The notes: generated from the sequence alone by a model not told the origin. A DNA stretch of 50,287 nt from Perkinsus chesapeaki ATCC PRA-425 (GCA_013115145.1 JAAPAO010000226.1:1-50287), one strand, 5' to 3'; shown: positions 5,915 to 39,491, counted from the stretch's first letter. A program made the numbers and translations.

Positions 5915-7583
5915 TTAGTCAGTACGGAGGCACAACCATACCATAGAGTTACACTTGAAACCGCTACCGAAGGCAACCTGGAGAATCCTGTGACCGGGTT
6001 GCAGATGACCCGACCTCTCAATGAAACCGAGCTCGTACCAGATAGAGCTGCTACTGGTATTGCCCATATGATAAAGATCTAATCTTGATGGGAGAATGTC
6101 TCGGTCACTGAGATTAAGGTTCTTTTGGACACCATCAAGGACACCACGGCCTCCAGCATGGATGCAGAAATGGTTAATGCCTTTCTTGAAATCAGGAACG
6201 TATTTTTTGTTAAGAACGGCCTTAACAAGCTCAGGAATGGGTAAGATATGAGGAACCAGTCGTCTGAAGTTAACAGCGATGGTTTTGCCGGCGACGTCGA
6301 CGATGTTCTTGGCGAGGAAAACACCGCGGTGACCCCCCTCATCCTGATCCTCCCAAACACAGCCGTAGTCCTTCTCAGTCTTGGACTGTTGAGCACGTAC
6401 AACATTAAGAAGCTTATACTTAGCACGGGTGTCAGGCTTATTAGTTAATAAGATAGCAGTAGCACCACAACGGAAGAGAGTGTTCTGGACTAAAAATCCG
6501 CGCTCATTGCCATTATAGACTTGTTGAGCTGTTATCTCAGTCGATACAACAACGCACTTCATGTTCTTCCTGGTCTGTAGAAGACGTTGGGCGAGATCGA
6601 TGGATATACCATTCGCACTGCAACCCATACCTGTAAAGATGGGTATCAACGGTAAGCTTATTGTCGACGACACTTACCGGAAAGGTTGTAGGTGAGAACG
6701 TCACTGCGCATACCAAATTTATGAACTAGCATAGCGCAAAGTGAAGGAGTTGGAGAGACCATAGAGCAGTTAACGATGAGAATCTGAAGACGTGAACGCG
6801 ATTAGCTCCAGATTGGGCACGTTGGTTACATCGATATCCTTGGCTGTGATGCCAGTCTTATCCATCAGTCCCTGTAGAGCGCCGCTCATAGTAGTCTCGC
6901 CCTCGAATCGGGAATCAGCCAGAGTAGAGCTCCACCTCTGTCCGTCCTTAAGCGACTTAATCTGACATGAACCAGATCTCCACGACATAGACCGTGGTAT
7001 GATTACCATATTGGGAGGGAAGGCGGTATGATCACTGGTACCAGAGTTGACCAAAAGCCTGCGCATGAAGTCAAGGCTGTCAATAGTGAAGTTTTTGTCG
7101 GTTGAGAATATATTAATAATTTGCTCACGAGACACCCTCCACGACTCTGGTGGTATGAATTCGCAGTGATCAATACAGTAGACGTTGCGTTGAGGGAAGA
7201 AATGGCGTTGAATGAAGAAAACACATCCGGCAAATACAAGGGCTACAACACCTAAAAGACGAAGAGTGACGTCAGCAGGCTACAGGAACGATTACTGTTG
7301 TGCTGTAACCATCCGAGGGCATCACCGTTAGTGATATAAGAGGCAACGACAGCCACTACGGCCATAAGGATAGCCCAGAGGAAACGATACCTGATAGGGA
7401 AGCTTTGATGCTAATAGAAGGGAATGTTTATGAGCACCTGTAGAAAGCCACAGTAATATAGTCCTTCAGACGGATGGTCCATGCAACTCTATTCTCGAAG
7501 GGCACCGATGTCGTGGGTTCATGAACCTCAGCGAACATGGGGGAGGTTGGCAGTTGAGTGACGGGCTTCTTAGTAGAGGACAT
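5915..7583 (-). CDS. KCS: FAE1-type 3-ketoacyl-CoA synthase, copy 2 (complete)
   Basis: Catalytic triad motifs [15 protein letters not shown] and [12 protein letters not shown], plus [15 protein letters not shown]. The 5 intron positions match copy 1. ATG at 7583 directly follows TTTAG. Confidence 0.95.
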
Positions 7584-7845
7584 CTAAAGGCAAGGAACTA
7601 CGTATATCTATCAGACCTCCCCGAAGGCTGGAGACAAGCTTGTGTCGAACTCCGTTATCAGCGATGCGTGTGACGTCTTCACTTCGCAAAGTAACGAAAC
7701 TCGAGTATAGGACCCGCGTTCGAACCCTGGTGCCGCTGTTTCTCTTCCATTTATTTTCGAAAAAGCAAGTTCGCGTCTCGCGCTTGGTTGAGTCGTTAAT
7801 TGGTTTGCAGCGTTTTGGCATCTTCTTCGGCCTCTCTCTGATCTA

Positions 7846-9560: not shown

Positions 9561-11955
<2,395 letters not shown>

Positions 11956-12077: not shown

Positions 12078-15000
12078 TTACCATCCTTCCTTACCATCAA
12101 AGCCGGTGAAGCCAGTGAGAAGGAAAACCGGGAAGTACCTGAGAGTCGTACGTGTGAGATGTGATGTGATGGTGCCCTACGGTTTGTCCTCAATTTGGGA
12201 ACACCAGTTCCAAGCGCTAGTAAGCCTGCCGTCAATACAACTACCTGAGCGAAATAAACAATTTTGAAATACCTGGACTGGGAATCGTACCGGCGTCGAA
12301 GAAGTTGTCACCACCAGAGCCGTCGAAAGCATGACGGAAGAAGTCCGATAAAATAATACGATGAAGATTCTCAACCTGACCGCGCGCCACGATATTATCG
12401 AGTTGATTATGATACTTACACCACCGAAGTTCTTAACCAAATTGGACATGCCTGGTGCATCTTTCATCTCAGCTATCTTATCCAAGCAGAGAACCAGTGG
12501 GCCTAGTATCCGTGGGACCTGTACATAAACCATATAGATTCTACTAAGTGCGAAGAGTCCTCAACGAGGACGAGCTCGGGACTGTGGTATCCATGGTACG
12601 TGCATACACAGCCACTTGCGAAAGTAAGTTAAATAAGAAAGAGCCTTTATTGACTCCTTTGTCGCCCTGTGCTCGTCCTTATGAACAAGCGATAGACTAG
12701 AATGATGATTTCTATAACCGTAATAAGGCAAGAAGGACTTCTTAATGACAACTTGAAGGAAGTGTGGTAGTATTATTACCTGAACGTATTTATCGATAAA
12801 CATGAGAGCATTGGGAACGTTATGGTCTCCAAGATGAACGATAGTGCCTGAAGACAAGTACTGTGGAAGAGGAGGGGAGTGATGATAAGGTGGTAATTAC
12901 TTCCAATCCATTTATCACCAAGCTGTCGTTGCACTCTGGCTACTATTTGTCTCATCGCCTTCATAACCTGCAAAGTTGAGGTGTTAAAGTCGAGAGCGGT
13001 ATGACGATAACCACTACCTTAGGGCTCTTCTGGACTCTATGAAGGCCCTGCCCAGTCTGTTGTAGTGTATAAGGGTTGGTTGGATCCAATAAATCCTCTT
13101 CGGCTAAATGCCATAGTCTGTACATATCACTAATAACCTAATAACCCGACTCATCGCCCATTCGCCCACCATTACGGTACCTCCCGCCACAATGTTAAAC
13201 TTTGCAGCACGAAGTTGTACTGTCGAGCGTGGGAGTGTGTGAGCCTGGAACCATTGTTACCTTCTTGAATGGCCAGTGATACGTTGAATCTGATGAAGAG
13301 GAGGTGGTCTGGATGAAGCCAAGGCTGCTGCTGCTGCTGCTGATGCCGAGGCTGCCCCTACTGTTCGGTGACATCCATATCAATCCTATCGGGAGAGAAG
13401 TAATGTTGCATATACTGTATCATTCTGTCACAAGGAAGGCGATTGAACCGCAAATATGTACCTGTTAAACCGGTGCTACTGAAGAGGATGGAATGTATTC
13501 GGTATGTTACTGTGATCGCCTAAGGCGTAGATGCACTGCTCGATGTCCTCTTGAGTCAGCCGAGCGCCTTCAACTTCCTCACTGTCCAAGGCGTTATCGT
13601 CCCCATCACCTATTAGACACCATGAGACCCAGGTTCGAATCTTGGTGATGGCGTTTTACTGGAGTCCTCATCAGTGCGTCCAGAGAACATATAGGAGAAG
13701 TAACCGCCGAAGTGGCCTTTATTCTTCTTCCGTTGGGTCCCCTTTGCACAATACTTCCGCGATAGTTTCCTTATGGCATTCTCCTTCTGAAAGATGAATA
13801 ATGTGATATAGCCCATGTGGGGATACTGCGGTGGGACGTATTAACGCTACGGCCTTCATAGATCGGAAGGAGAAAAAACAAAAGTCAAACAAGTTACCGC
13901 ACGGTCTCAGTGGACTTTATGAAAATCCCACTACGAGGCTGCAATGCGGCAGTGAGCAAATAATGCTAAACAACTTTCCAGCAATCAATATTGACCCAGA
14001 AATCGATTTTACTTCTCTTGTCTATTTTATTGCGTCGGGCTGGATATCGCCTTCGGAATTATACCGACTTTCCCCCACATTACAGCTTTGATATCCCTTT
14101 GAACCTCCCCTCTAGATCGGCCTTCGCTGTATATCTCCCTAGTAGCAACCTAAACCATAGTACTACCATAACTAACTAATGAGGCCACTACTTCTAATAG
14201 GGGATCATCTAGCATCTTCAATGCCCTAGGGCTGGACTGTAGGGTAGAGTAGACGGTCTTGACAGGCTCTATCACTCCTATGTGCTCGAACAGCCCTACA
14301 GTGTCTGGACGCACCTGAGTAACACCTCATACCGCTCTCTCCGCTATACTCCAAAGAAGCCTGATAGAGGTCCTGCTCTTCAAGATGAATATAGCAACAG
14401 TCCCTTCGAATCGACCACCACCCCTACATCTTGTCGACTTACCGTATCCATGAGAAAGTATATAAGTTTGCCGTAGGTAGATCGCATCCTCTCAGGGTTC
14501 AGTAGCTTATACCGTCTACTAATCTCGAATGCCTTCCGATAAAAGTCCCCATACGCAGCATAATCTCGGCTCTTCACCAATGCTGCCCCTTTACTATAGT
14601 CCTCCGCCACTACCAACCCATTGAGTATAGCACACATCTGTCGAGCTCTTATGGCCATTTGCCTGGCTGGGCTGACATTTGGGGGGAATTGGACATCAAC
14701 TTTATCGGTATAATCGGCAACCTTAAAAGGCAACGGGATGACTAGACTCTAGTAACCTATCCAGTATCACTTGCATGGCGCTCTCTACTAGCCGAAGCAG
14801 CTTCCTTTCGTCGTAGGTCAATCTAAAGGCAATACTCCTCACTAGAACATATAGGCTATCATTCACCTTATAGGAACCCATTTTGCCCGGGCCATCATTG
14901 TGGCTTGATCGTCCATCGCTCCAAGGCCGCCGGCCTCTGGTTCGGATTCCTCAGATGTTTCAACGCCTTTATCTGAAGTTCACTTCTCTACAGTCGTTGG

Positions 15001-15878
15001 AGTGATAATAGCGTGCAATTCATCTTCATTATTTACTCTTCACAAAGTTTCATTGTCTCACCTGCGTATTGGTCCATCTCGGCCTCCCTTTCCTCCTCGG
15101 CACTGGCATGCATTACAGTATCGGATGCAAGATCCTCCGGGACATGTACTGGTATACCAGCAAGCTTAGCTACTTGCAACCTAATAACGATCAACCTCGA
15201 AAAATATCTTTCTCTTTCATCAAAATTTGCCAATGTCTACTGTTTGACCGCGACCTTCGGAAATTAATACGGCCATTTCAACAGGGGATAGAACCCTCGA
15301 CCTCCCTCAAGATAGACGAACGTTCTCCCCACTCGACTAATCGATGCTTTACCTCTCCTCTTCACCACAACTACGCACGTATCCCTGGACAACAGCTACC
15401 AGATCCCGGTGTTTCATGCTCGACACTAGCCCAGCGAGATCGTCATCTGATGGGCTGCTCAAATTTTGTCGGGATTCGACTTCCATGTAACACAAGCAAC
15501 TCCGTAGACGTGCTGTCTCCCTCCCACTTCACACAACAATATAATAGGGAAAGAAGAAACAATTGTACAAAGGTGTACTAATGAGCAGGATACGACAAGA
15601 CATCACGACCATTAACTTCCAATTGGCTGAGACGACTACCAATGGGAATATCCCGCAAACATATTGAAAACGCATCAAAGAGATGAGGGATAACGGTTGC
15701 TGCTGCCTAATGAGAGAAAACGTGGTAACGAATAGGGCTTAGCAATACCGCCTCCTTTCAACGTGGGAAATGGTATAATACCGTTAAGCGAGGCTATACT
15801 GATGGTAAGTGGAAACTTATGAGATTGCGGTAGCCATCTGAAGCATATAGATGCAGAAATGCGCGATAGAGAGGACAT
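12078..15878 (-). CDS. DUF2009/UPF0652-family protein (non-canonical E2-like C-terminal domain); start uncertain
   Basis: RAKWVPIRLTYDERKLLRL, ADYTDKVD, FEISRRYKLLNPERMRSTYGKL, SRLTHSHARQYNFVLQSLTLWRE, HLGDHNVPNALMFIDKY, SCIDGRLTSAWNWCS, GFTGFDG. Family recognised from memory of these motifs. Confidence 0.82.
12994..13004. other. Intronic GAGCGGTATGA motif, copy 1
   Basis: Exact 11-mer inside the intron between ...VQKSPK and VMKAMR. The host sense strand reads TCATACCGCTC. Confidence 0.5.
13620..13653 (+). pseudogene. tRNA 3'-half fragment (His-like), antisense within a 50-nt intron
   Basis: CCATG-AGAC-CCAGG-TTCGAAT-CTTGG-TGATGGC-G followed by TTTT. T-stem fully paired (one G-U). The 3' acceptor strand resembles tRNA-His (cf. 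yeast GCCATC.. / ..GATGGC). No 5' half seen. Confidence 0.7.
14325..14346. other. Intronic TAGCGGA-RR-GAGCGGTATGAGG motif, copy 2
   Basis: The host (minus) strand reads TAGCGGAGAGAGCGGTATGAGG, ending 10 nt before the predicted 3' splice site. Confidence 0.5.
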
Positions 15879-15918
15879 CGATAGTTATGCAAAAATGATG
15901 AGTTATAGCTCAACACGT

Positions 15919-16566
15919 TCAAGAATGGCTAGAACTATCCCTTCTTAACACAGTGTTTACAAAACGCTTGAGAGACTCTTTATTAGTATAGACCAAACGA
16001 GCTTGCTCCAATGCAGCTCTGTCTCTAACAGCTTCCTCTACAGTCTTACGTAAGGGAGCATAGACTCTCTCACGATCAACATAAATAGCAGCTATATAAC
16101 CACCTCTGTTTCTCCATACACCACGCGGAGGATTGTTACCCTTTTTAATTCTAGAACTAGGGGACCTCGTGGGCGGTGATGGCTTCGGCGATGGTGAGCA
16201 TTTACCACGTTGCATAAGATAATGACCCCCTAATGACCTTGCACCGCTCGGAGAAGCCTTGACCAAGGATAAAGGGGGAAAGGAGGATAAAATATCATCC
16301 GGGAAAATCGGCTTGGACAAACCGTTCATAGGACCATCCCCTGATACACCAGAAGATGTAGTAGTGGACGTATCAACAGATAGAGAGTCTTTAACCGTTG
16401 CATTATACGAGGACGGCGAAAAGGTACAAGGCTTCCAGTGGGAAGGTGCGGGTTTAGCTTCGTAATTGGCTGGAGTAATGGCAGCAGTACTGGACAGTAA
16501 TGACCGTCCCAAATTCAATAGGAAATCGTCTTCCTCCGCCTTCTTCTGGTAGCCAATCACGCTCAT
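15919..16566 (-). CDS. AP2-like DNA-binding domain protein (intronless)
   Basis: Low-complexity Ser/Pro N-terminus. The C-terminal PRGVWRNRGGYIAAIYVDRERVYAPLRKTVEEAVRDR has the three-strand-plus-helix pattern of AP2/integrase-type DNA-binding domains. Confidence 0.68.
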   Translation of the reverse strand: MSVIGYQKKAEEDDFLLNLGRSLLSSTAAITPANYEAKPAPSHWKPCTFSPSSYNATVKDSLSVDTSTTTSSGVSGDGPMNGLSKPIFPDDILSSFPPLSLVKASPSGARSLGGHYLMQRGKCSPSPKPSPPTRSPSSRIKKGNNPPRGVWRNRGGYIAAIYVDRERVYAPLRKTVEEAVRDRAALEQARLVYTNKESLKRFVNTVLRRDSSSHS

Positions 16567-16636
16567 GTTGTCGACAGCAGGTGTAAGAGTAAAGCTAGCT
16601 AGCGAGTTAGCCTGATATTAGCGGCGAGCTCGTTAG

Positions 16637-16674
16637 CGTTGAGGAAATACAAGATTGCAAGAACGTCAAGATTT
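16637..16674. promoter_or_regulatory. Composite intergenic motif, copy A
   Basis: CGTTGAGGAAATAC-aagat-TGCAAGA-acgt-CAAGATTT between the divergent AP2-like and PDCD4 genes. Near-identical blocks occur at 43255-43294. Confidence 0.55.
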
Positions 16675-16763
16675 TCGCCTGCGCGACCTTGGTCGCATTT
16701 ATCATCCGCCCTGTTGCTGGTGTAACTTTCTTCGTCCACCTTATCGTCTTAAGTGTAGCTGAG

Positions 16764-19169
16764 ATGCCTCCCGCCCCTAAATCAGTTAGGACCGCAGGAG
16801 GGTCTCATAAAGCAAGTTGGAGCAAAAAAGTAGTAATCGTGGCTAGCTAGCAATGACCCTAATTGCAATCTTTTAGGTCCTGTCATCTGAGGAGGTCGGT
16901 ACAGCTGCGTTAGACAGGTATGAAAGGTATCTTGAGGTTAACGGTGCAGGATACGTTGTTGGTTAGTAACGATCCCAACTATGACGAGATCCTTGACGGC
17001 GATTACAATCTCGATATATACGAATGTGGAACCACATTCCGCACCGTTCGCCAGAGAGCTCCTAGCTACGCTACAGGCCATGTTAATATAGAAGAGCCCA
17101 CGTACTGCGATATTCCAACCTCAAAAATATCTTTACTATCCCTACTAGGCTTTCTCTGCCCGAATTCCAGAAGAAGCTATCGGGTATCTTACACGATTAT
17201 TATGCTACTAAAAACGCCACAGCAGCGGTGGATGATATCAAAGACCTCGAGTGTAGGAGGACCTCAATCGACCTGTTCTGGTATCTTTACGCCCACAGGT
17301 CCGATGTATCATGATGAGCTCGTTTATCGCATCGTGAAGATTTCCCTAGATCGTAATAGTGAGGTTAAGGTGTATGAAAGATATGCTTTAGATGACGAGG
17401 AGTGCCAAGAGCTGGCATCATCGTTGCTGACTCTACTTTACTCGGCCCATGTTGTAACCCAATCCCAGAATCAGAGGGCTTTCGAGAAGCTTATTGAAGT
17501 TTGGGAGGACTTAAGCATCGATGTGAAACAGCCTGAGCAACACCCTAGTATCTATACTACTGGCGTCTTGGACAGGTCCCCAACGCTCCAGAACAGATAT
17601 TGAAGTTCCTAGACTGTGCCCTATGTGACGGTATTGTTGCTGAGAACTTTGTTACTAGACTACCGGAAACCCTCCTCAGAAAGGTATCTTAAAGCATCTA
17701 TCTGCTTCCCCCAGCGATCGTATAGATTCGGGACGCTGATGCGGACGAGTTCATTGACGTTTACGAGCAACTTAATGAGTTGAAAAAGTTTAAGGAGCAC
17801 GCAAAGGTGAGAAGGATCATTTAGTCTCTTTCCGGTTTTTCTATCAAATTCGTCTCAGGCAATCCTCGTTGATTATTTCGCATCTCACGGTGGCGGTGGT
17901 GCCGATGATGTCGCCCAGAGCCTTGTCGCTCTAGACAGGCCCGGAATGCACCACGAATTTGTAAGCCCTCGGAGCAGCCATACAACTTGCCTATGTCTCC
18001 TATAAGGTACGGTCTGCGCTCCAGCTGTCCTTTGATCGTGACGTTCGCACCAGAGCGGAAGTCATTCAACTTTTGGCGGATCTCCGTGACAAGAGAGTCT
18101 TAACCGACGATGACATCTTACTGGGCTTCGGTCGAATGCTAGGTTGGACCAGTACCGTTGCTTGCTTGATCTGCTTGGGTTCTAGGAGCCCTTGACGACT
18201 TCACTCTGGACTGCCCCGGGGCACCGGATATGCTTTCTGGTCTCATTGTTCAAGGCGTCGTTGAAGAGCTGCTTCCACCCGCCTTCTTAAAGAACAGCCT
18301 CAGGTAGTAGCCCTGTGAATAATCTCATACCGCTCCATCCTCTGATCAGGCTCCGCACTGGCAACGATGTCGGTATAAACTGTATTAGACATGCTATTAG
18401 TATTCTAGACAGTGAGAGGCACTGGCGTCAGCGTCACGGTGGCCATGGCCGCTTCAACCTAGCCGGGAGTCCATGTAGTGACCGCATTGGTACTTGTATT
18501 CCCGAGGCCATCATGTCCCCGCCACTCTTAGCGCAATGAGTTCCTCCTTTCCTTTAGCTAATAAGAACAAGGTTGAATTCTCGGCTCTCGAGGAAGAGGA
18601 TATAAAGAAGTGGAAGCTGGAGTTGAGGAACGCTATCGCCGAGTAGGCCTTGCAATGGAGGCGCCGCTCGTCACCAGTCTAGGGGGGCGGTATGCAGGTA
18701 CTTCTGCAGTGCAGATGGCGATGAGTTCTGTAGATTGGCCGCAGAATGGGACATGTCATCTGAGCAGGCGGCCATCTGTGTTAAATACATCCTGATGATG
18801 GCCATGGAGAGGACTGGAGAGCAATGTCTCATGGCAGGTAACTCCACAAGGCTCTTGGACTTGGTAATAGGAAAGCTTTTGCTCAGTGGATCTGCTATGC
18901 CATTGCGTACTCGTGAGGGAGGAGCTGTCCAAGGATGATATCGTGAACGGTTTCAAGCTCATAATGGAGAACATTGCCGATGTCAAATTGGATATTCCGG
19001 ATGCAGGTGAGCAGGTGATGACACCGTCGCCGGGAATCGAACCCGCGTCGTTGGTTCGTCAGTCGATATGTTACGTGCCTTCCGTCGTCTTTGCATCAAA
19101 CGAGGCATTCTAGAGCGTACCGCTCCCGGTGTCGATGATGATGATGGTGAGGAGGAGGAGGGGAAATAG
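16764..19169 (+). CDS. PDCD4: PDCD4-like MA3-domain protein
   Basis: ALD.NDPNYD signature and MA3 repeats (YHDELVYRIVKISLDR...FEKLIEVWEDLSIDV; MHHEF...FGRMLGALDDFTLDCPGA; GFKLIMENIADVKLDIPDAVDML), then an acidic tail. Confidence 0.88.
18325..18335. other. Intronic GAGCGGTATGA motif, copy 3
   Basis: TCATACCGCTC inside a 46-nt PDCD4 intron. Confidence 0.5.
19022..19055 (-). pseudogene. tRNA 3'-half fragment (Glu-like), antisense within a 56-nt intron
   Basis: The minus strand reads ACCAA-CGAC-GCGGG-TTCGATT-CCCGG-CGACGGT-G. B-box GGTTCGATTCC is perfect and 4/5 T-stem pairs form. The 3' end resembles eukaryotic tRNA-Glu (..CCCGGCGACGGA). No 5' half seen. Confidence 0.7.
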
Positions 19170-21076: not shown

Positions 21077-22276
21077 ATGTCCGTGGCGATCGACGGGGAA
21101 AATGAGGGCCACTTCAAGAAGTTGTACAAGAAGAATGTTATAAGTCAAATCCGAAAGTACAAACAAGGCAAGATCGACCTGGCCCAGCTCGAGATAAGAA
21201 GCTCGGTTCCCAAGGATGACCTCATCAAGGTCATTGGCCTCGTGGACGGTGAGGGCCTCACTGTGGCCGTGGAGGAGATGCTGATCGATGTTAACAGCCG
21301 GAACAGAGCGGCTCGGCGAGCACACAATAGAGATGCCCATGATGGTGAAGTTGAGGAGATCCTCAAAGTCGCTGAAGGTGCCTTGACCACACAAGTGACG
21401 GTGAAGAAAGTATTGGAGGCGGAGCGAAGCAGATTGGATTGGTCTCAGCTACCTAAACATTTGATACCAGAAATGATGAATATCAGTCTGTATTATCATC
21501 TTAAGAGGGGCGACTACGAGGGGGCTGCGCTGCGTATTAACCATGGAAGGAGGAAGCGAGCTCAGATAGAGCATATGATATCTCTGGTGAGATCCCAGGT
21601 TCAATTCCCGGCTCCAACAAGTGGTCCTGTTAAAATAATTGATCTTGGTGGTGGCCGAGGTGATCTTGCCCTTACACTAGCCCACGTATTCCCAGCTTCT
21701 GATGTAACCGTTCTCGATATCAAAGAGCTCTCTGTACAGCAAGCCCTCTACCGCGCCGACCAGCTCGGGCTCTCCCATCGCGTTCACGGTAAGGTCTGCG
21801 ATCTGGCCGAGTATGCCGTGGATCACTCCGAAGGTTTCGACGTCGCTGTCGGTCTTCACTGTTGCGCCGGTCTCTCGGATGTCGCCATCGATCTGTGTGA
21901 GAGGAATGCTCGTCATCGGCCAACGACCCTGATAGCCTGCACCTGCTGCTTTGGTAAAATGAAGCAATGGTTCCCTCCCCACCTGCAGCAGCAGCGAGGG
22001 TTTCGGTATCCTCGCACGCCACAGCTGGGCCTCGACCTTGAACAGTACGAAGTGATATGCCGTACCGCAGAGGATGACCGTCGAGGGGAGATAAGCCGTC
22101 GAGCAAAGCTGCTAATTAATAAAGATCGAATCAACGCTGCTGCCTTACGTGCATCATCTGGTGGAGCAGCCGGGTCCGGTGAACTGGTCTCTGCGGAGAT
22201 TGTCGAGCTGCCTCCTGTACATAGCTACAAGAACGAAGTCCTTGTAATGAAGTGGGCACCAACTGGCGACAAATAG
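21077..22276 (+). CDS. Class I SAM-dependent methyltransferase (Methyltransf_32-like), intronless
   Basis: IIDLGGGRGDL motif I, VTVLDI, VGLHCCAGLSD and ACTCCF match the GLHxCGxLSD...CC pattern of this family. First ATG at 21077. Confidence 0.85.
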   Translation: MSVAIDGENEGHFKKLYKKNVISQIRKYKQGKIDLAQLEIRSSVPKDDLIKVIGLVDGEGLTVAVEEMLIDVNSRNRAARRAHNRDAHDGEVEEILKVAEGALTTQVTVKKVLEAERSRLDWSQLPKHLIPEMMNISLYYHLKRGDYEGAALRINHGRRKRAQIEHMISLVRSQVQFPAPTSGPVKIIDLGGGRGDLALTLAHVFPASDVTVLDIKELSVQQALYRADQLGLSHRVHGKVCDLAEYAVDHSEGFDVAVGLHCCAGLSDVAIDLCERNARHRPTTLIACTCCFGKMKQWFPPHLQQQRGFRYPRTPQLGLDLEQYEVICRTAEDDRRGEISRRAKLLINKDRINAAALRASSGGAAGSGELVSAEIVELPPVHSYKNEVLVMKWAPTGDK

Positions 22277-25664: not shown

Positions 25665-28640
25665 TCATTTATAGAAACTACTCCTAAAACGCTCATACAG
25701 TGCAATGCCGAGGCATTCTATCACCACCGTTACCACAATGTGTATGCCACAATAGAGAGCGAGTCTGAAAGGTAAAGGCGATGGTAGACGGTGCTCGGCG
25801 GCCAATGATATGTGAATCAGTTTATATAAAAATATAACAGCATAAACGAGAGCCAATATAAACGCTGGGGGGAGAGGCTTCAAGCTGCTGTACTTCGTAA
25901 CGTCCCTCAGTGTCAACGATATCGCTGCAGAGAGGTAGATGCAGCAAAGCGATTCGTAAAGTGCCCAATTCTCATATGAGCGACACTCCGTCCCAAAGTG
26001 TGGATGGTGAGGTTCGACCGACCATGTCTCAGAATTCACCAGTAGAATTAGCAGCACTTGGAGTCCAATGCCAAGAAGTAGCTGCATCAGCATGAGACAG
26101 GCTTCGACGATGAACGGGCTGGGCTGATGCATTTCCGATATCGACGTCTGGAAGCTCGGTCGTAGGAAGAGGGCAGTGAGCAAGAGAGATGGTAGGGAGT
26201 AGAGGAGGTCAAGCTTGGCGTATTGAGAGTCTGTAAGGTTATCCTCGAAATAATATAGCAATGATACACATGACACTTGGAGAATGGCATACGTCATCGC
26301 GAGACGCATAATAATCACCGCCGCCGCGAAAGCGCCTCGGCCTTGAGCCAGAACTTCGCAGCACAACCATGGCCCCTTGGATGTGTCAACACCCACAAGA
26401 CAGCCTCCAGCGAGATATTGTAGTGCTTTAGCTGTGTTCCATCTTGGGCTGTGCGAGGCCGAGCTTAATACTAGGCCAACCGCCGCAGAAGAAAGTGCCG
26501 GGATATCATTAGTGCCGTCACCGCACATCATCACAGTACGACCTTCGGCATTACAAGAGCGTACATAGCATGCCTTCGACCACGGTGTCATGCGCGTCTG
26601 GACCCTATCATCTTTCACCAGAGGGTCTGTTAGTGTACTATTCGCCTGGAGCAGCCCAATAACACTAGCCGACGCTCGAGCAGTACCATCAGCATCACCA
26701 GTACAAAGGGAACATTTTATGTTCGCCCCAGACAGTTCAGTGACGACTTTATTTGACAGCGGGTGGACTGTCATATGGATGACGACTATACCGATGAATC
26801 GGAGGTTTCCAGGAATCAACCAGTCAGCCTCAGGTACGTTACGATTCTCTCGGCCACCATACGCTATAACGCGGAAGCCACTATTGGTGTACATGTTCAC
26901 TACTTGGTAGAAGTTTGAAGGTATCGTTGCGGAGTTACTCGCAGCGCAAAGGGCTTCAGGGGCTCCTCGAACGTATAAGGCCGTAGGCCCATGGGGAGAC
27001 CCGCAGAGGACGCCAGCAAGCCGAGTGGTCGGGTCGAAGGGAGCATGAGCTATTACTGGGGCCGGGTAAGCAACATCGATGTATGTTGGGATATCGCCAT
27101 TAATCGAGAAGCATGAGGACGTGGCAAAGGAATCCTTGTTGCTGACAAGTGCCAAGCCGTCAGAGTAGTCAAATACTGTTGTCTCACGTGCTTCGTCCGG
27201 GCGAGTCGGGTACGCCGGAAAGTCGTCGCTGGCCATTTCACCAACGAACTCAAGCAGTGCTTCGTCGACAGTATCGGTGCCACGCCGACCAAGTTCTGAC
27301 TGATGGAAGACTGTCACGGCACGACGCAAGGCCCCCCCTTGGGGGGAACCTGCCGCTCGAGATGGCTCCCGTAGAACGGTAAGTGGGTTGCCATAACCAA
27401 CACCGACAACAGTGGCATCGCCAGTAGTGATGGTGTTGGTCTTGTCCAGGACGACCTGGTCCACGAGGCCAGCCAGGACCAGAGGCGGTAGAGAACCGCG
27501 CTGGGCTGCCAAGACTCCGGGAGGAAGGCGCAGAGCCGACGAGCAAGAGAGGTGTAAGACCAAAAGTGCAACAGGTAGAGCTGGAGGCAGCGCATCAGTG
27601 AGAACATCTAGAGAACTCATTATTCGGTAATGCATGGGAGCATGCTCCAATGACAACCAACTGAGCGTAAATGCCACCATGCCTGCCGCGGCCAGGAGTA
27701 GCACACACGCCAGGATAGCCTGTCTCAGACGGAACTCCGCCGCACCCCATTCGTGAGCAATAGTGGCCTCTAGATGGAGTCCTTGGAGCGTCTGGTGGCC
27801 TGTAGCCAGAACGAGAAAAGTAGCGTCGCCGCTGGCATCCAGGAGTCTTCCTCCACACAGAAGCAAAGATTCGGGTCCAGGATGTGATCCTCGAGCAGCT
27901 GGGAGAAGCTTGTACACCTCGGATTCACCCGATATGAAGGAGTGTTCAACAGTCGCAGAACCACACACCAATACGCAGTCAGCGGGTATCGAACCTGCGG
28001 TCTCCAGCTTCACAACATCACCCGGTACCAAAGCAGTAACCGGAACCTCTTCGAACACACCGCGCTGCTTCACGCGAAGGACTACACCTTCCACTGATTC
28101 ATCTGCTGCCGCTTTCATCTCCCGATAGGTTCTATACAGGAGACGCAAATGGAGTCCTCGGGCCAGGATGGTGAGCACCAATATAGTGAGGGCATAGTCG
28201 TAGTAGTGATCTAGTAGCCAGAAGCTAACGGCCACCAATTGAAACCATACAACAGGAGATGATATAAAGTAAGCCCAAAATGCTCGGCGAAACCACAACC
28301 ACGAGCTCGAGGGGAGGGCGCTGTTGAGGGCGGTGCCAGCGTACGCAGCTTTTAAGGTAGCTCGGGCCTGCGGATCTGGGGATGCTAGTTCTTCGGGCAC
28401 TGGCTGATGGAACATGCCTCGTCGGAACGACTCCTCCTCTGGAACGTACATGTAAACAGCGTTACCAATCCGAAACCACATAGCGTGTCCGTGACGGTGA
28501 AGGGGCAGCTTCCTGCCGTTGAGGTAGATGGAAGAGGAGCCTTTACTGAGGGTAGCGGTCACATTTCGCACCGAGTTCACATCGACAAAACGCTTGTAAC
28601 ATCTTGGCATAGCGTCCAGATGGACGGTGAAGGTCTCCAT
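25665..28640 (-). CDS. Divergent P5B-type P-type ATPase (ATP13A-like), intronless
   Basis: 991-aa ORF with LVPGDVV, IPADCVL, SGES, PPALP (P5B M4 signature), DKTNT (for DKTGT), RGAPE, GFRVIAY, TGD, MCGDGTND and multiple hydrophobic segments. Confidence 0.92.
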   Translation of the reverse strand: METFTVHLDAMPRCYKRFVDVNSVRNVTATLSKGSSSIYLNGRKLPLHRHGHAMWFRIGNAVYMYVPEEESFRRGMFHQPVPEELASPDPQARATLKAAYAGTALNSALPSSSWLWFRRAFWAYFISSPVVWFQLVAVSFWLLDHYYDYALTILVLTILARGLHLRLLYRTYREMKAAADESVEGVVLRVKQRGVFEEVPVTALVPGDVVKLETAGSIPADCVLVCGSATVEHSFISGESEVYKLLPAARGSHPGPESLLLCGGRLLDASGDATFLVLATGHQTLQGLHLEATIAHEWGAAEFRLRQAILACVLLLAAAGMVAFTLSWLSLEHAPMHYRIMSSLDVLTDALPPALPVALLVLHLSCSSALRLPPGVLAAQRGSLPPLVLAGLVDQVVLDKTNTITTGDATVVGVGYGNPLTVLREPSRAAGSPQGGALRRAVTVFHQSELGRRGTDTVDEALLEFVGEMASDDFPAYPTRPDEARETTVFDYSDGLALVSNKDSFATSSCFSINGDIPTYIDVAYPAPVIAHAPFDPTTRLAGVLCGSPHGPTALYVRGAPEALCAASNSATIPSNFYQVVNMYTNSGFRVIAYGGRENRNVPEADWLIPGNLRFIGIVVIHMTVHPLSNKVVTELSGANIKCSLCTGDADGTARASASVIGLLQANSTLTDPLVKDDRVQTRMTPWSKACYVRSCNAEGRTVMMCGDGTNDIPALSSAAVGLVLSSASHSPRWNTAKALQYLAGGCLVGVDTSKGPWLCCEVLAQGRGAFAAAVIIMRLAMTYAILQVSCVSLLYYFEDNLTDSQYAKLDLLYSLPSLLLTALFLRPSFQTSISEMHQPSPFIVEACLMLMQLLLGIGLQVLLILLVNSETWSVEPHHPHFGTECRSYENWALYESLCCIYLSAAISLTLRDVTKYSSLKPLPPAFILALVYAVIFLYKLIHISLAAEHRLPSPLPFRLALYCGIHIVVTVVIECLGIALYERFRSSFYK

Positions 28641-37846: not shown

Positions 37847-39491
37847 TCATGTCTGTAGTATGCCACCATCAAGCTTGGGTAAAGGAGGCACCACCATGCC
37901 ACCCTACCACAACAGCACCATCACTGAAGTATCTATTCCGAGCATGCCCTACCTGCGCCTGAACCCTCCCACTCGAGGCCGCTGATCCTTTGCTGCGCCC
38001 ACTCCTTCGCGACCGGCATGACTTAGTAGTGTCCGTTCGATAGGATCGGGCGGTATGCAGCGATTCAGCTGCTTTCGGGCGGCCTTCCCATCGCTTGGGC
38101 AACGATGCTTCGCTCCGCCCTGTATCCCTACCACTTTTAATTTCCGCTATCCTATCCCATGCCTGATTTGAGAGAAGTGCGGTATGAACACCTGTTAGCA
38201 TACGTACAGTAGGCCTAGGTTTCGGATATGGAAGGCTCGGCTGGCTTAGCCTATGGTCCACATTTGATACTATATCAAACCCTCTACGATACTCCTCAGC
38301 AAACCTACATACCATAACGCTCCCAACAACCCTCTATGAGGCAAGTACCTATCGTGGCTGATACCGTTCATTCTCCTACTCTTCTCGACATGCCCCCGAC
38401 TCACATCTCGGACCTGCCGCGCAGTAGCTGGCTGCTAGCCCCCACCACTATTATCATTCCCTATATATTACATGCCAATTGTTCTCCATTATATATCTAT
38501 TCTTATACCGCTCCTTCCTCTCATCAGCTGCTATATCCATCACCTCCAATGCCTCTGAGTTATTAACTTCATGGCTCACAGGATTCCAAAAGTTCCCCAG
38601 ACGTCCCCTATAGACACATCTCTCCTCCAACCCCTGAGCACTAATAAGCATGCATTACCTAACACAAGGAGGTTGCTGTGCCAAGGCCCTCTCGACCCGC
38701 TCCACGTCCATGGCTTCAGACACTCTCTTCATGCCTACCAATGAGGCGTAAATCCACGATAGAATCAGCGGTATTACTGTCCTCCTCTCTGGGATCAGTA
38801 AAACGCTGCAACACGGGATCGAACCTGTTTCTCTAAGAGGAACGCCTCTCGCTCTACCATCGGAGCAGATTTCCTACCGCTCTATATTTAGCAGCTGCGA
38901 AAGCCTTCTGTAATGATGCTTCCTTCTCAGCTTGCTTTTCATGATCATACAGATACTTAGTGGTTATAATATTATAGTCCTTCTCTGTATAGGATGGCAC
39001 CAGACGTTCCCCCTATAAGCCCATTGCCACCATTCCCTATCCCTCCTCCTCCTCACTACCTTCCTAACTCCACTGCCATCATCTCCCTTTGGCCTATCCT
39101 TCGGATTTGCCCAATGATGCACATCATGAGACAGGTTTGATAATATATTATAATCCACCAAAGTAGATGGCATACTAGACCTCCCTACCCCTGGCCTCTT
39201 GTATCTGACACCTCTAGCTATCACCACCTCTTACCATCCTATCACCACTCACGTTAAGGTCATAGGATGATCTCCTGTGAGGCCCTGTAGTCTAGACGCA
39301 TTGGTGATGATATCAAATGGTTGCTCTCTAAGCAGCTGTATATCAATTGCCGCGTTAAAATGCCTGCCAATAGACTAAAGTCGCCGCCGCTTTCCCCTGT
39401 TATATCACTTTATCCGAGCCTTCTCCTCTTCAATCCTCAAAGCCAAATCCCCGTCCTTATCCCGAAGGCTGCCTACTATACGAGTGGACAT
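37847..39491 (-). CDS. Repeat-containing helical protein, possibly flagellar; ends approximate
   Basis: Recurrent short motifs FDIITN, YNILSNL, YNIITTKY, FDPVLQRF, FWNPVSHE and FDIVSNV separated by charged helices. The flagellar assignment is inference only. Confidence 0.5.

Follow-up and report, generated by a model that had tools for sequence, protein, structure and literature searches.

Why would two unrelated genes on opposite strands each hold, within an intron of about 50 nucleotides (nt), a piece that resembles part of a transfer RNA (tRNA) in antisense orientation? This question is raised by a 50,287-nt stretch of the Perkinsus chesapeaki ATCC PRA-425 genome (JAAPAO010000226.1:1-50287; hereafter the window, with positions counted from its first letter). 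A preliminary description of the window had proposed a system of short spliceosomal introns built around antisense tRNA 3' halves and had quoted two of them, one in a gene with a DUF2009 domain (intron 1, carrying site 1) and one in the PDCD4 gene (intron 2, carrying site 2). Both quoted strings occur exactly where they had been placed, each once in the window, and the two introns measure 50 nt and 56 nt. With moderate confidence, we read them as introns of conserved position that carry an antisense 17-nt T-arm, the one in the DUF2009 gene being a putative TFIIIC-binding B box that stands alone, in the manner of an extra-TFIIIC (ETC) site.

Conservation of the T-arm in the DUF2009 intron

The window was compared with syntenic loci of Perkinsus olseni (L001, L002) and Perkinsus marinus ATCC 50983 (L003, L004), and a PDCD4 exon used as query gave protein matches in both species. 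Gene order was the same in all three species, with the DUF2009/adenylosuccinate-lyase gene on one strand, followed by PDCD4, NHL, methyltransferase and P-type ATPase. Protein identity of the aligned codons was 87–91%. Four-fold sites (n = 797) were identical three-way at 19% and pairwise at 32–43%, and silent or neutral sites between the three species are therefore close to saturation. P. olseni and P. marinus are closer to each other than to P. chesapeaki, the outgroup. The features of intron 1 and its host exons are:

13610-13659, minus strand: intron 1, a 50-nt GT-AG intron (GTAAAA...TAATAG) within the DUF2009-domain coding region; read-through meets a stop codon
13629-13645, plus strand: T-arm-like hairpin of site 1, CCAGG/TTCGAAT/CTTGG, antisense to the host gene; all five stem positions pair (5/5), one of them as G-T
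13632-13642, plus strand: B box of site 1, GGTTCGAATCT, a 10/11 match to the consensus
13660-13786, minus strand: exon upstream of intron 1; its tblastn matches to both sister loci (83–86% identity) stop at the donor
13512-13609, minus strand: exon downstream of intron 1, with 69–78% identity (tblastn) to both sister loci, beginning at the acceptor; RNA loose end at 13461/~13512

Intron 1 splits the DUF2009 domain (profile positions 41–116 upstream, 211–419 downstream) and has orthologs at the same position and codon phase, of 50 nt in P. olseni (L002:7142-7191, minus strand) and 51 nt in P. marinus (L003:7919-7969, minus strand). RNA evidence was taken from contigs of two small runs. One contig covers 13676–13786 of the upstream exon and splices to 14084; neighbouring minus-strand introns are also spliced in the contigs (13787–14083, 14148–14189, 14823–14866), and a loose end joins 13461 to about 13512. 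Introns 1 and 2 both lie outside the RNA contig coverage, but the exons on either side of each align in phase with both sister loci as far as the splice sites, and the two introns are genuine. A check for these introns in sister species had been proposed in the preliminary description, and both positions were found in P. olseni and P. marinus.

The antisense T-arm was located at the same place in intron 1 of all three species (50, 50 and 51 nt). Scored against the B-box consensus GGTTCGANTCC, site 1 reads GGTTCGAATCT in the window (10/11), GGTTCAATTCT in P. olseni (10/11) and GGTTCGATCCC in P. marinus (11/11; L003:7940-7950). Positions G52, G53, T54, T55, C56, A58 and C61 were invariant, and all changes within the B box were confined to the consensus-degenerate positions 57, 59 and 60 and to position 62; the consensus leaves all four free or nearly so. 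Three-way identity extended to 20/40 columns of the intron interior and was concentrated on the T-arm (11/17). The conserved block is ~22 nt long, reaching past the 11-nt B box on both sides. The would-be acceptor and anticodon-stem strands of site 1 were scrambled between the three species.

This degree of conservation was compared with that of the other introns in the locus. We took as introns the gaps that tblastx left between exons matched to the sister loci, because three ab initio intron finders over-called, merged genes and missed RNA-supported introns, and were dropped. The resulting set comprised 42 three-way introns in addition to intron 1, plus 30 further two-way gaps (~73 window introns). 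In the 42 other triples, the best 12-column window usually contained 3–5 identical columns. Control 17-nt intron windows with at least 11 identical columns numbered 4 of 1,777 (0.23%), and all four fell in one other intron. By our own calculation, the binomial chance of the T-arm identity at site 1, given a neutral rate of 19%, is ~5e-5. The T-arm window had been fixed from the P. chesapeaki genome before the relatives were inspected, so no position correction was needed. Had the introns not been conserved, the probability of a B-box match of 10/11 or better in both sister introns, with place and orientation shared, would be of the order of 1e-6, again by our own calculation, from the match frequencies in the orthologous introns. 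Judged from these alignments, the T-arm/B box of the DUF2009 intron is a selected element.

Two other accounts of the conserved block were tried and rejected. Introns in the locus are without a branch-point consensus resembling the conserved GAACC of site 1, which occurred in 1 of 106 introns; it is not a general intron motif and was dismissed as a branch point. A stable RNA structure was likewise discarded, as the folding z-scores of the three intron 1 orthologs (−2.1, +0.4 and −0.1) revealed no unusual folding common to them.

How far does the likeness to tRNA extend? At both sites a 7-nt TTCGAnn loop (TTCGAAT at site 1, TTCGATT at site 2) is closed by a 5-bp stem, as expected of a T-arm, and the likeness is restricted to this arm, which holds the B box, an internal promoter element of RNA polymerase III (Pol III). 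The preliminary description had traced it over tRNA positions ~39–73. Its T-arm portion stands; the remainder gained nothing from Rfam or ARAGORN and is not conserved in the sister species. ARAGORN at default settings found no tRNA in the window, and Rfam returned no tRNA match at E ≤ 10, whether the whole window or 91-base stretches around each site were searched. The 18-nt T-arm of site 2 alone gave an Rfam match, through the transfer-messenger RNA (tmRNA) model (13.7 bits); that of site 1 gave none. Lowering the ARAGORN threshold to 80% recovered both sites, but among 24 calls versus 25.4 ± 4.6 in shuffles, and the corresponding figures were 7 versus 4.9 at 85% and 1 versus 0.5 at 90%. Relaxed calls therefore matched the shuffle level at every threshold. 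At neither site did a covariance model or tRNA finder score a tRNA gene or 3' half above noise. The acceptor, variable-loop and anticodon-stem strands that had been named carry no testable signal, since they are without a partner strand.

Other hallmarks of a tRNA gene were also sought. No Perkinsus tRNA gene was found in the window or the four sister loci, and isotype labels such as 'His-like' and 'Glu-like' are tentative. No A box (TRGCNNAGTGG-like) was found 30–60 nt upstream of site 1 on the plus strand. A TTTT, the would-be Pol III terminator, follows the would-be discriminator of site 1 in the window species only; this run complements the GTAAAA donor and is missing in both orthologs and at site 2. 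Further tRNA-like stretches were set aside. A 'tRNA-Lys(ctt)' at 15274–15347, in a 139-nt intron, had no Rfam support and no conservation and was attributed to noise. A 'decayed tRNA' at 38773–38832 (minus strand), in which an exact B box at 38815 is followed by 11 nt and TTTTAC, a layout reminiscent of site 1, and preceded by a D-arm-like stretch, was attributed to chance within a coding exon (RNRFDPVLQRF). P. marinus (L004:576-635) has kept this exon at the protein level, but there the nucleotides do not form a B box.

The PDCD4 intron and other B boxes in the window

The second T-arm lies in the last intron of the PDCD4 gene, on the opposite strand to the DUF2009 gene:

19007-19062, plus strand: intron 2, 56 nt (GTGAGC...GTCAG), last intron of the PDCD4 (MA3-domain) gene
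19030-19046, minus strand: T-arm-like hairpin of site 2, GCGGG/TTCGATT/CCCGG, with 4/5 pairs, antisense to PDCD4
19033-19043, minus strand: B box of site 2, GGTTCGATTCC, an exact 11/11 match
18886-19006, plus strand: penultimate PDCD4 exon, with sister-locus matches; MA3 profile positions 67–95 of 113
19063-19169, plus strand: last PDCD4 exon, with sister-locus matches; stop codon at 19167-19169

Against both sister loci, the exons flanking intron 2 matched at 94% and about 80%, and the annotated P. olseni and P. marinus proteins continue ...KLDIPDAVDMLRAF... across the junction. The orthologous introns, at the same position, are 186 nt (P. olseni) and 141 nt (P. marinus) long, and in neither was a B-box match of even 9/11 found. 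B boxes were counted in the three-species set of 126 orthologous introns (8.5 kb), among which site 2 was the sole 11/11 match, with 0.065 expected. The element in the PDCD4 intron may be a lineage-specific member of the same class, either younger or differentially lost, or it may have arisen by chance. With the window species as the outgroup, a single gain of the element would be as parsimonious as a single loss.

The wider counts gave no indication of a system. As the preliminary description had already noted, GGTTCGA alone occurs near chance frequency in the window (8 found, 4.5 expected from shuffles). B boxes with at most one mismatch numbered 12 (8.9 expected) and exact B boxes 3 (0.29 expected); of these three, the ones at 21598 (methyltransferase exon) and at 38815 lie in coding sequence. 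Across the 126 orthologous introns, there were 10 matches of at least 9/11 against 19.6 expected, and one 10/11 match against 1.7 expected. The 30 extra two-way gaps held no such match. The proposed system of tRNA-built introns was thus not borne out by the count in the window, where no enrichment was detected and 2–3 of the ~73 introns qualify, close to chance.

One of the coding matches was shared between species:

21598-21608, plus strand: exact B box in an exon, GGTTCAATTCC, within the methyltransferase coding sequence and just upstream of the GxGxG S-adenosylmethionine (SAM) motif

This B box was exact in all three species (GGTTCGATTCC in the relatives; L002:14895-14905 and L003:14738-14748), although the encoded residues differ (SQVQFPA, SQVRFPG and SRVRFPG). 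Since 4% of exonic 11-mers in the aligned exons are conserved as strongly, the match is suggestive, and we treat it as a lead to a possibly related element. Every exact B box in the sister loci was the ortholog of a window B box, and the other exonic B-box-like matches fell to 7–8/11 in the relatives. A match at 27985 was rejected, being the coding sequence of a P-type ATPase motif.

Several other features of the window were recorded. A palindromic T-arm-like 17-mer, CCGCGTTCGAACCCTGG, is located at 7714–7730, between a 3-ketoacyl-CoA synthase gene (minus strand, 5915–7135) and the next plus-strand gene, and gives a 10/11 B-box match whichever strand is read; a search of the sister loci for this stretch returned a 542-nt contig only. 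The near-identity of 89–202 and 6482–6595 indicates two tandem 3-ketoacyl-CoA synthase (FAE1/KCS-type) paralogs. Beside the acceptor of another DUF2009-gene intron (12379–12413, minus strand), a 15–17-nt block, TTTCGTGGCGCGCGGTC, was identical in the three species, the intron being otherwise unalignable. The block is assigned to the intron because the DUF2009 profile runs on unbroken from one flanking exon to the next; it carries an E2F-like GGCGCGC core and is unrelated to tRNA. A number of minus-strand introns (12531–12776, 13793–14071, 11388–11586, 9781–9948, 14315–14439 and 15210–15348) were 2–6 times longer than their P. olseni and P. marinus orthologs, for example 246 nt versus 41/40 nt and 279 nt versus 75/104 nt. 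Among these enlarged introns, splicing of 13787–14083 was seen in the RNA contigs.

A putative TFIIIC site and its alternatives

The element in the DUF2009 intron is at least as old as the ancestor shared by the three species and has been held by purifying selection, while the remainder between the splice sites was randomised. The pattern that was kept is the B-box consensus itself, and for this reason a function at the DNA level seems most likely, in which a lone B box would dock TFIIIC with no tRNA being produced, as at an ETC site. The motif, its conservation and the lack of a tRNA gene around it are observed, whereas TFIIIC binding, and any barrier or chromatin role, are inferred. Site 1 may plausibly descend from a tRNA gene that the intron once harboured, since the T-arm can still be recognised in full, beyond the 11-mer. 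Two readings in the preliminary description were partly retained. The one in which B boxes persist as TFIIIC/ETC-like sites is favoured for the DUF2009 intron but not for the PDCD4 intron. The one in which nested tRNA genes were eroded survives as a possible origin, although nothing outside the T-arm scores as tRNA.

Several points count against a TFIIIC site. The stem at site 1 is conserved as sequence, without compensatory changes, and such identity would fit a DNA site and an RNA hairpin alike; the B-box-shaped variation favours the former. TFIIIC occupancy, and with it the existence of a B-box-binding TFIIIC in Perkinsus, is something that we infer. As the ~22-nt block is wider than the 11-nt B box, another protein or RNA reader is possible. 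The ~73 window introns hold 3 matches of at least 10/11 against ~1.2 expected, and one of the three (15285) is without other support. Finally, site 2 is absent from both relatives, and the chance of such a site across all surveyed introns is ~0.02–0.05 by our own calculation, which is suggestive, short of proof.

It is also conceivable, though we consider it unlikely, that the intron 1 block is an element of the precursor mRNA (pre-mRNA), such as a splicing enhancer, an RNA-binding-protein site or a small hairpin, which resembles an antisense T-arm, and that site 2 is due to chance. The extension of the block past the B box on both sides would agree with this, as would the T-arm hairpin seen in the centroid fold of the intron in P. 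olseni and again in P. marinus, and the lack of B-box enrichment in the window introns. The fully conserved non-tRNA block in the intron at 12379–12413 also demonstrates that conserved intronic elements exist here. However, the varying positions of site 1 are exactly the B-box-degenerate ones, and the stem is weaker in the pre-mRNA sense, in which the G-T pairs of the tRNA sense turn into A-C mismatches. The folding z-scores were unremarkable in two of the three species, the GAACC core was not recurrent in introns, and an exact exonic B box 8 kb away was also kept in all three species. Neutral decay of tRNA genes formerly present in the introns would leave the T-arm stem and loop as the part retained longest, and the TTTT after the would-be discriminator of site 1 in the window would suit such a relic. 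Yet with neutral sites near saturation and other introns unalignable, a neutral relic should be unrecognisable, whereas the B box is intact in three species; the TTTT, moreover, is missing in both sisters and overlaps the complement of the donor, and no tRNA signal extends beyond the T-arm. That both elements are such relics is decidedly improbable.

Creation of the introns by insertion of tRNA halves, or of a tRNA-derived mobile element in the manner of introners, might be suspected from the fact that each intron contains little beyond splice signals around the tRNA-like piece, and that intron 2 differs wholly from its orthologs in length and sequence. We give this very little credence. Both intron positions are common to three species whose silent sites are near-saturated, the site 2 intron is present without the element in both relatives, and the two elements share the T-arm core only, each 17-mer being unique in the window with no further copies. 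Intron gain by capture of tRNA halves, as raised in the preliminary description, is unsupported because both intron positions are ancient, predating the split of the three species, and the PDCD4 intron lacks the element in the relatives. The description had also suggested split-tRNA halves, a proposal that is likewise unsupported because the would-be acceptor strand at site 1 is free to vary between species. A last alternative is coincidence at both sites, with the conservation of site 1 produced by alignment or selection artefact. B boxes with at most one mismatch did occur at chance frequency (12 versus 8.9), all but one of the three exact matches fall in coding sequence, and the convincing-looking decayed tRNA at 38.8 kb proved to be coding as well. 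Against this, the T-arm window was set from the P. chesapeaki genome before the relatives were seen, and the orthologous introns, at 50/50/51 nt, make alignment trivial. With equal conservation in 0.23% of control windows and a joint sister-match chance of the order of 1e-6, coincidence would be a most improbable explanation.

A broader possibility, which we put forward tentatively and do not expect to hold, is that TFIIIC docking sites are maintained as a set within Perkinsus genes, in tiny introns and possibly in coding exons, such as that at 21598. These B boxes may have been left from old tRNA genes or may have evolved anew, and would then be held by selection. In a genome that is gene-dense and trans-splicing, they could punctuate chromatin or transcription, and some tiny introns would persist mainly as their carriers.

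Should the motif in intron 1 prove to work as a TFIIIC site, ETC-type sites would extend to alveolates and, among them, to a parasite of shellfish. The motif would also represent a rare case of selection on the content of a 50-nt intron beyond its splice signals, and would provide a concrete reason for the retention of some tiny introns. Most tRNA-like readings in the window (acceptor and anticodon strands, the T4 terminator, the 'tRNA-Lys' and the 38.8-kb 'decayed tRNA') were noise or coding, and genome-wide claims will therefore require a conservation filter rather than motif spotting. In the literature, we found no paper tying Perkinsus to TFIIIC, B boxes or tRNA-derived introns, nor any reporting ETC-like sites in other alveolates.

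Comparison with known systems

Introners, or intron-generating elements, have been described in Micromonas, fungi and the dinoflagellate relative Amoebophrya (PMC7789003). Introns 1 and 2 resemble them in being short introns with a recognisable element as their interior. However, introners are multi-copy, recent and variable in presence or absence between relatives, whereas introns 1 and 2 are old, sequence-unique and fixed in position, their 17-mers occurring once each in the window and their positions being common to the three species. Split-tRNA halves would be expected to keep a constant acceptor strand; that of site 1 varies freely among the three species.

TFIIIC can bind a B box without productive transcription. 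Like tRNA genes or pseudogenes nested in introns, and like tRNA-derived short interspersed nuclear elements (SINEs), the two sites place Pol III promoter elements inside genes of RNA polymerase II, in either orientation. The B boxes of tRNA-derived SINEs such as Alu are bound by TFIIIC (PMC7014570). Unlike nested tRNA genes and SINEs, the sites described here are without an A box, a cloverleaf or a repeat family, and 17–22 nt survive. In contrast to dispersed SINEs, the element is single-copy and orthologous across species.

The closest comparison is with ETC sites, conserved (extended) B-box motifs bound by TFIIIC without TFIIIB or Pol III, which are credited with barrier and insulator roles (PMC12409998). 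Sites 1 and 2 both matched the B-box consensus and neither belonged to a complete Pol III gene; conservation between species was found at site 1 and not at site 2. The known ETC sites of yeast are mostly intergenic or near promoters. Unlike these, the motif of site 1 fills the middle of a 50-nt spliceosomal intron in a coding region, and TFIIIC occupancy is here predicted from sequence. In common with the ETC sites of budding yeast, the chromosome-organizing clamp (COC) sites of fission yeast and the TFIIIC-only sites of human, mouse and Caenorhabditis elegans, site 1 is a lone B box with no surrounding tRNA gene, and like ETC sites it is conserved between species over a stretch wider than the minimal 11-mer.

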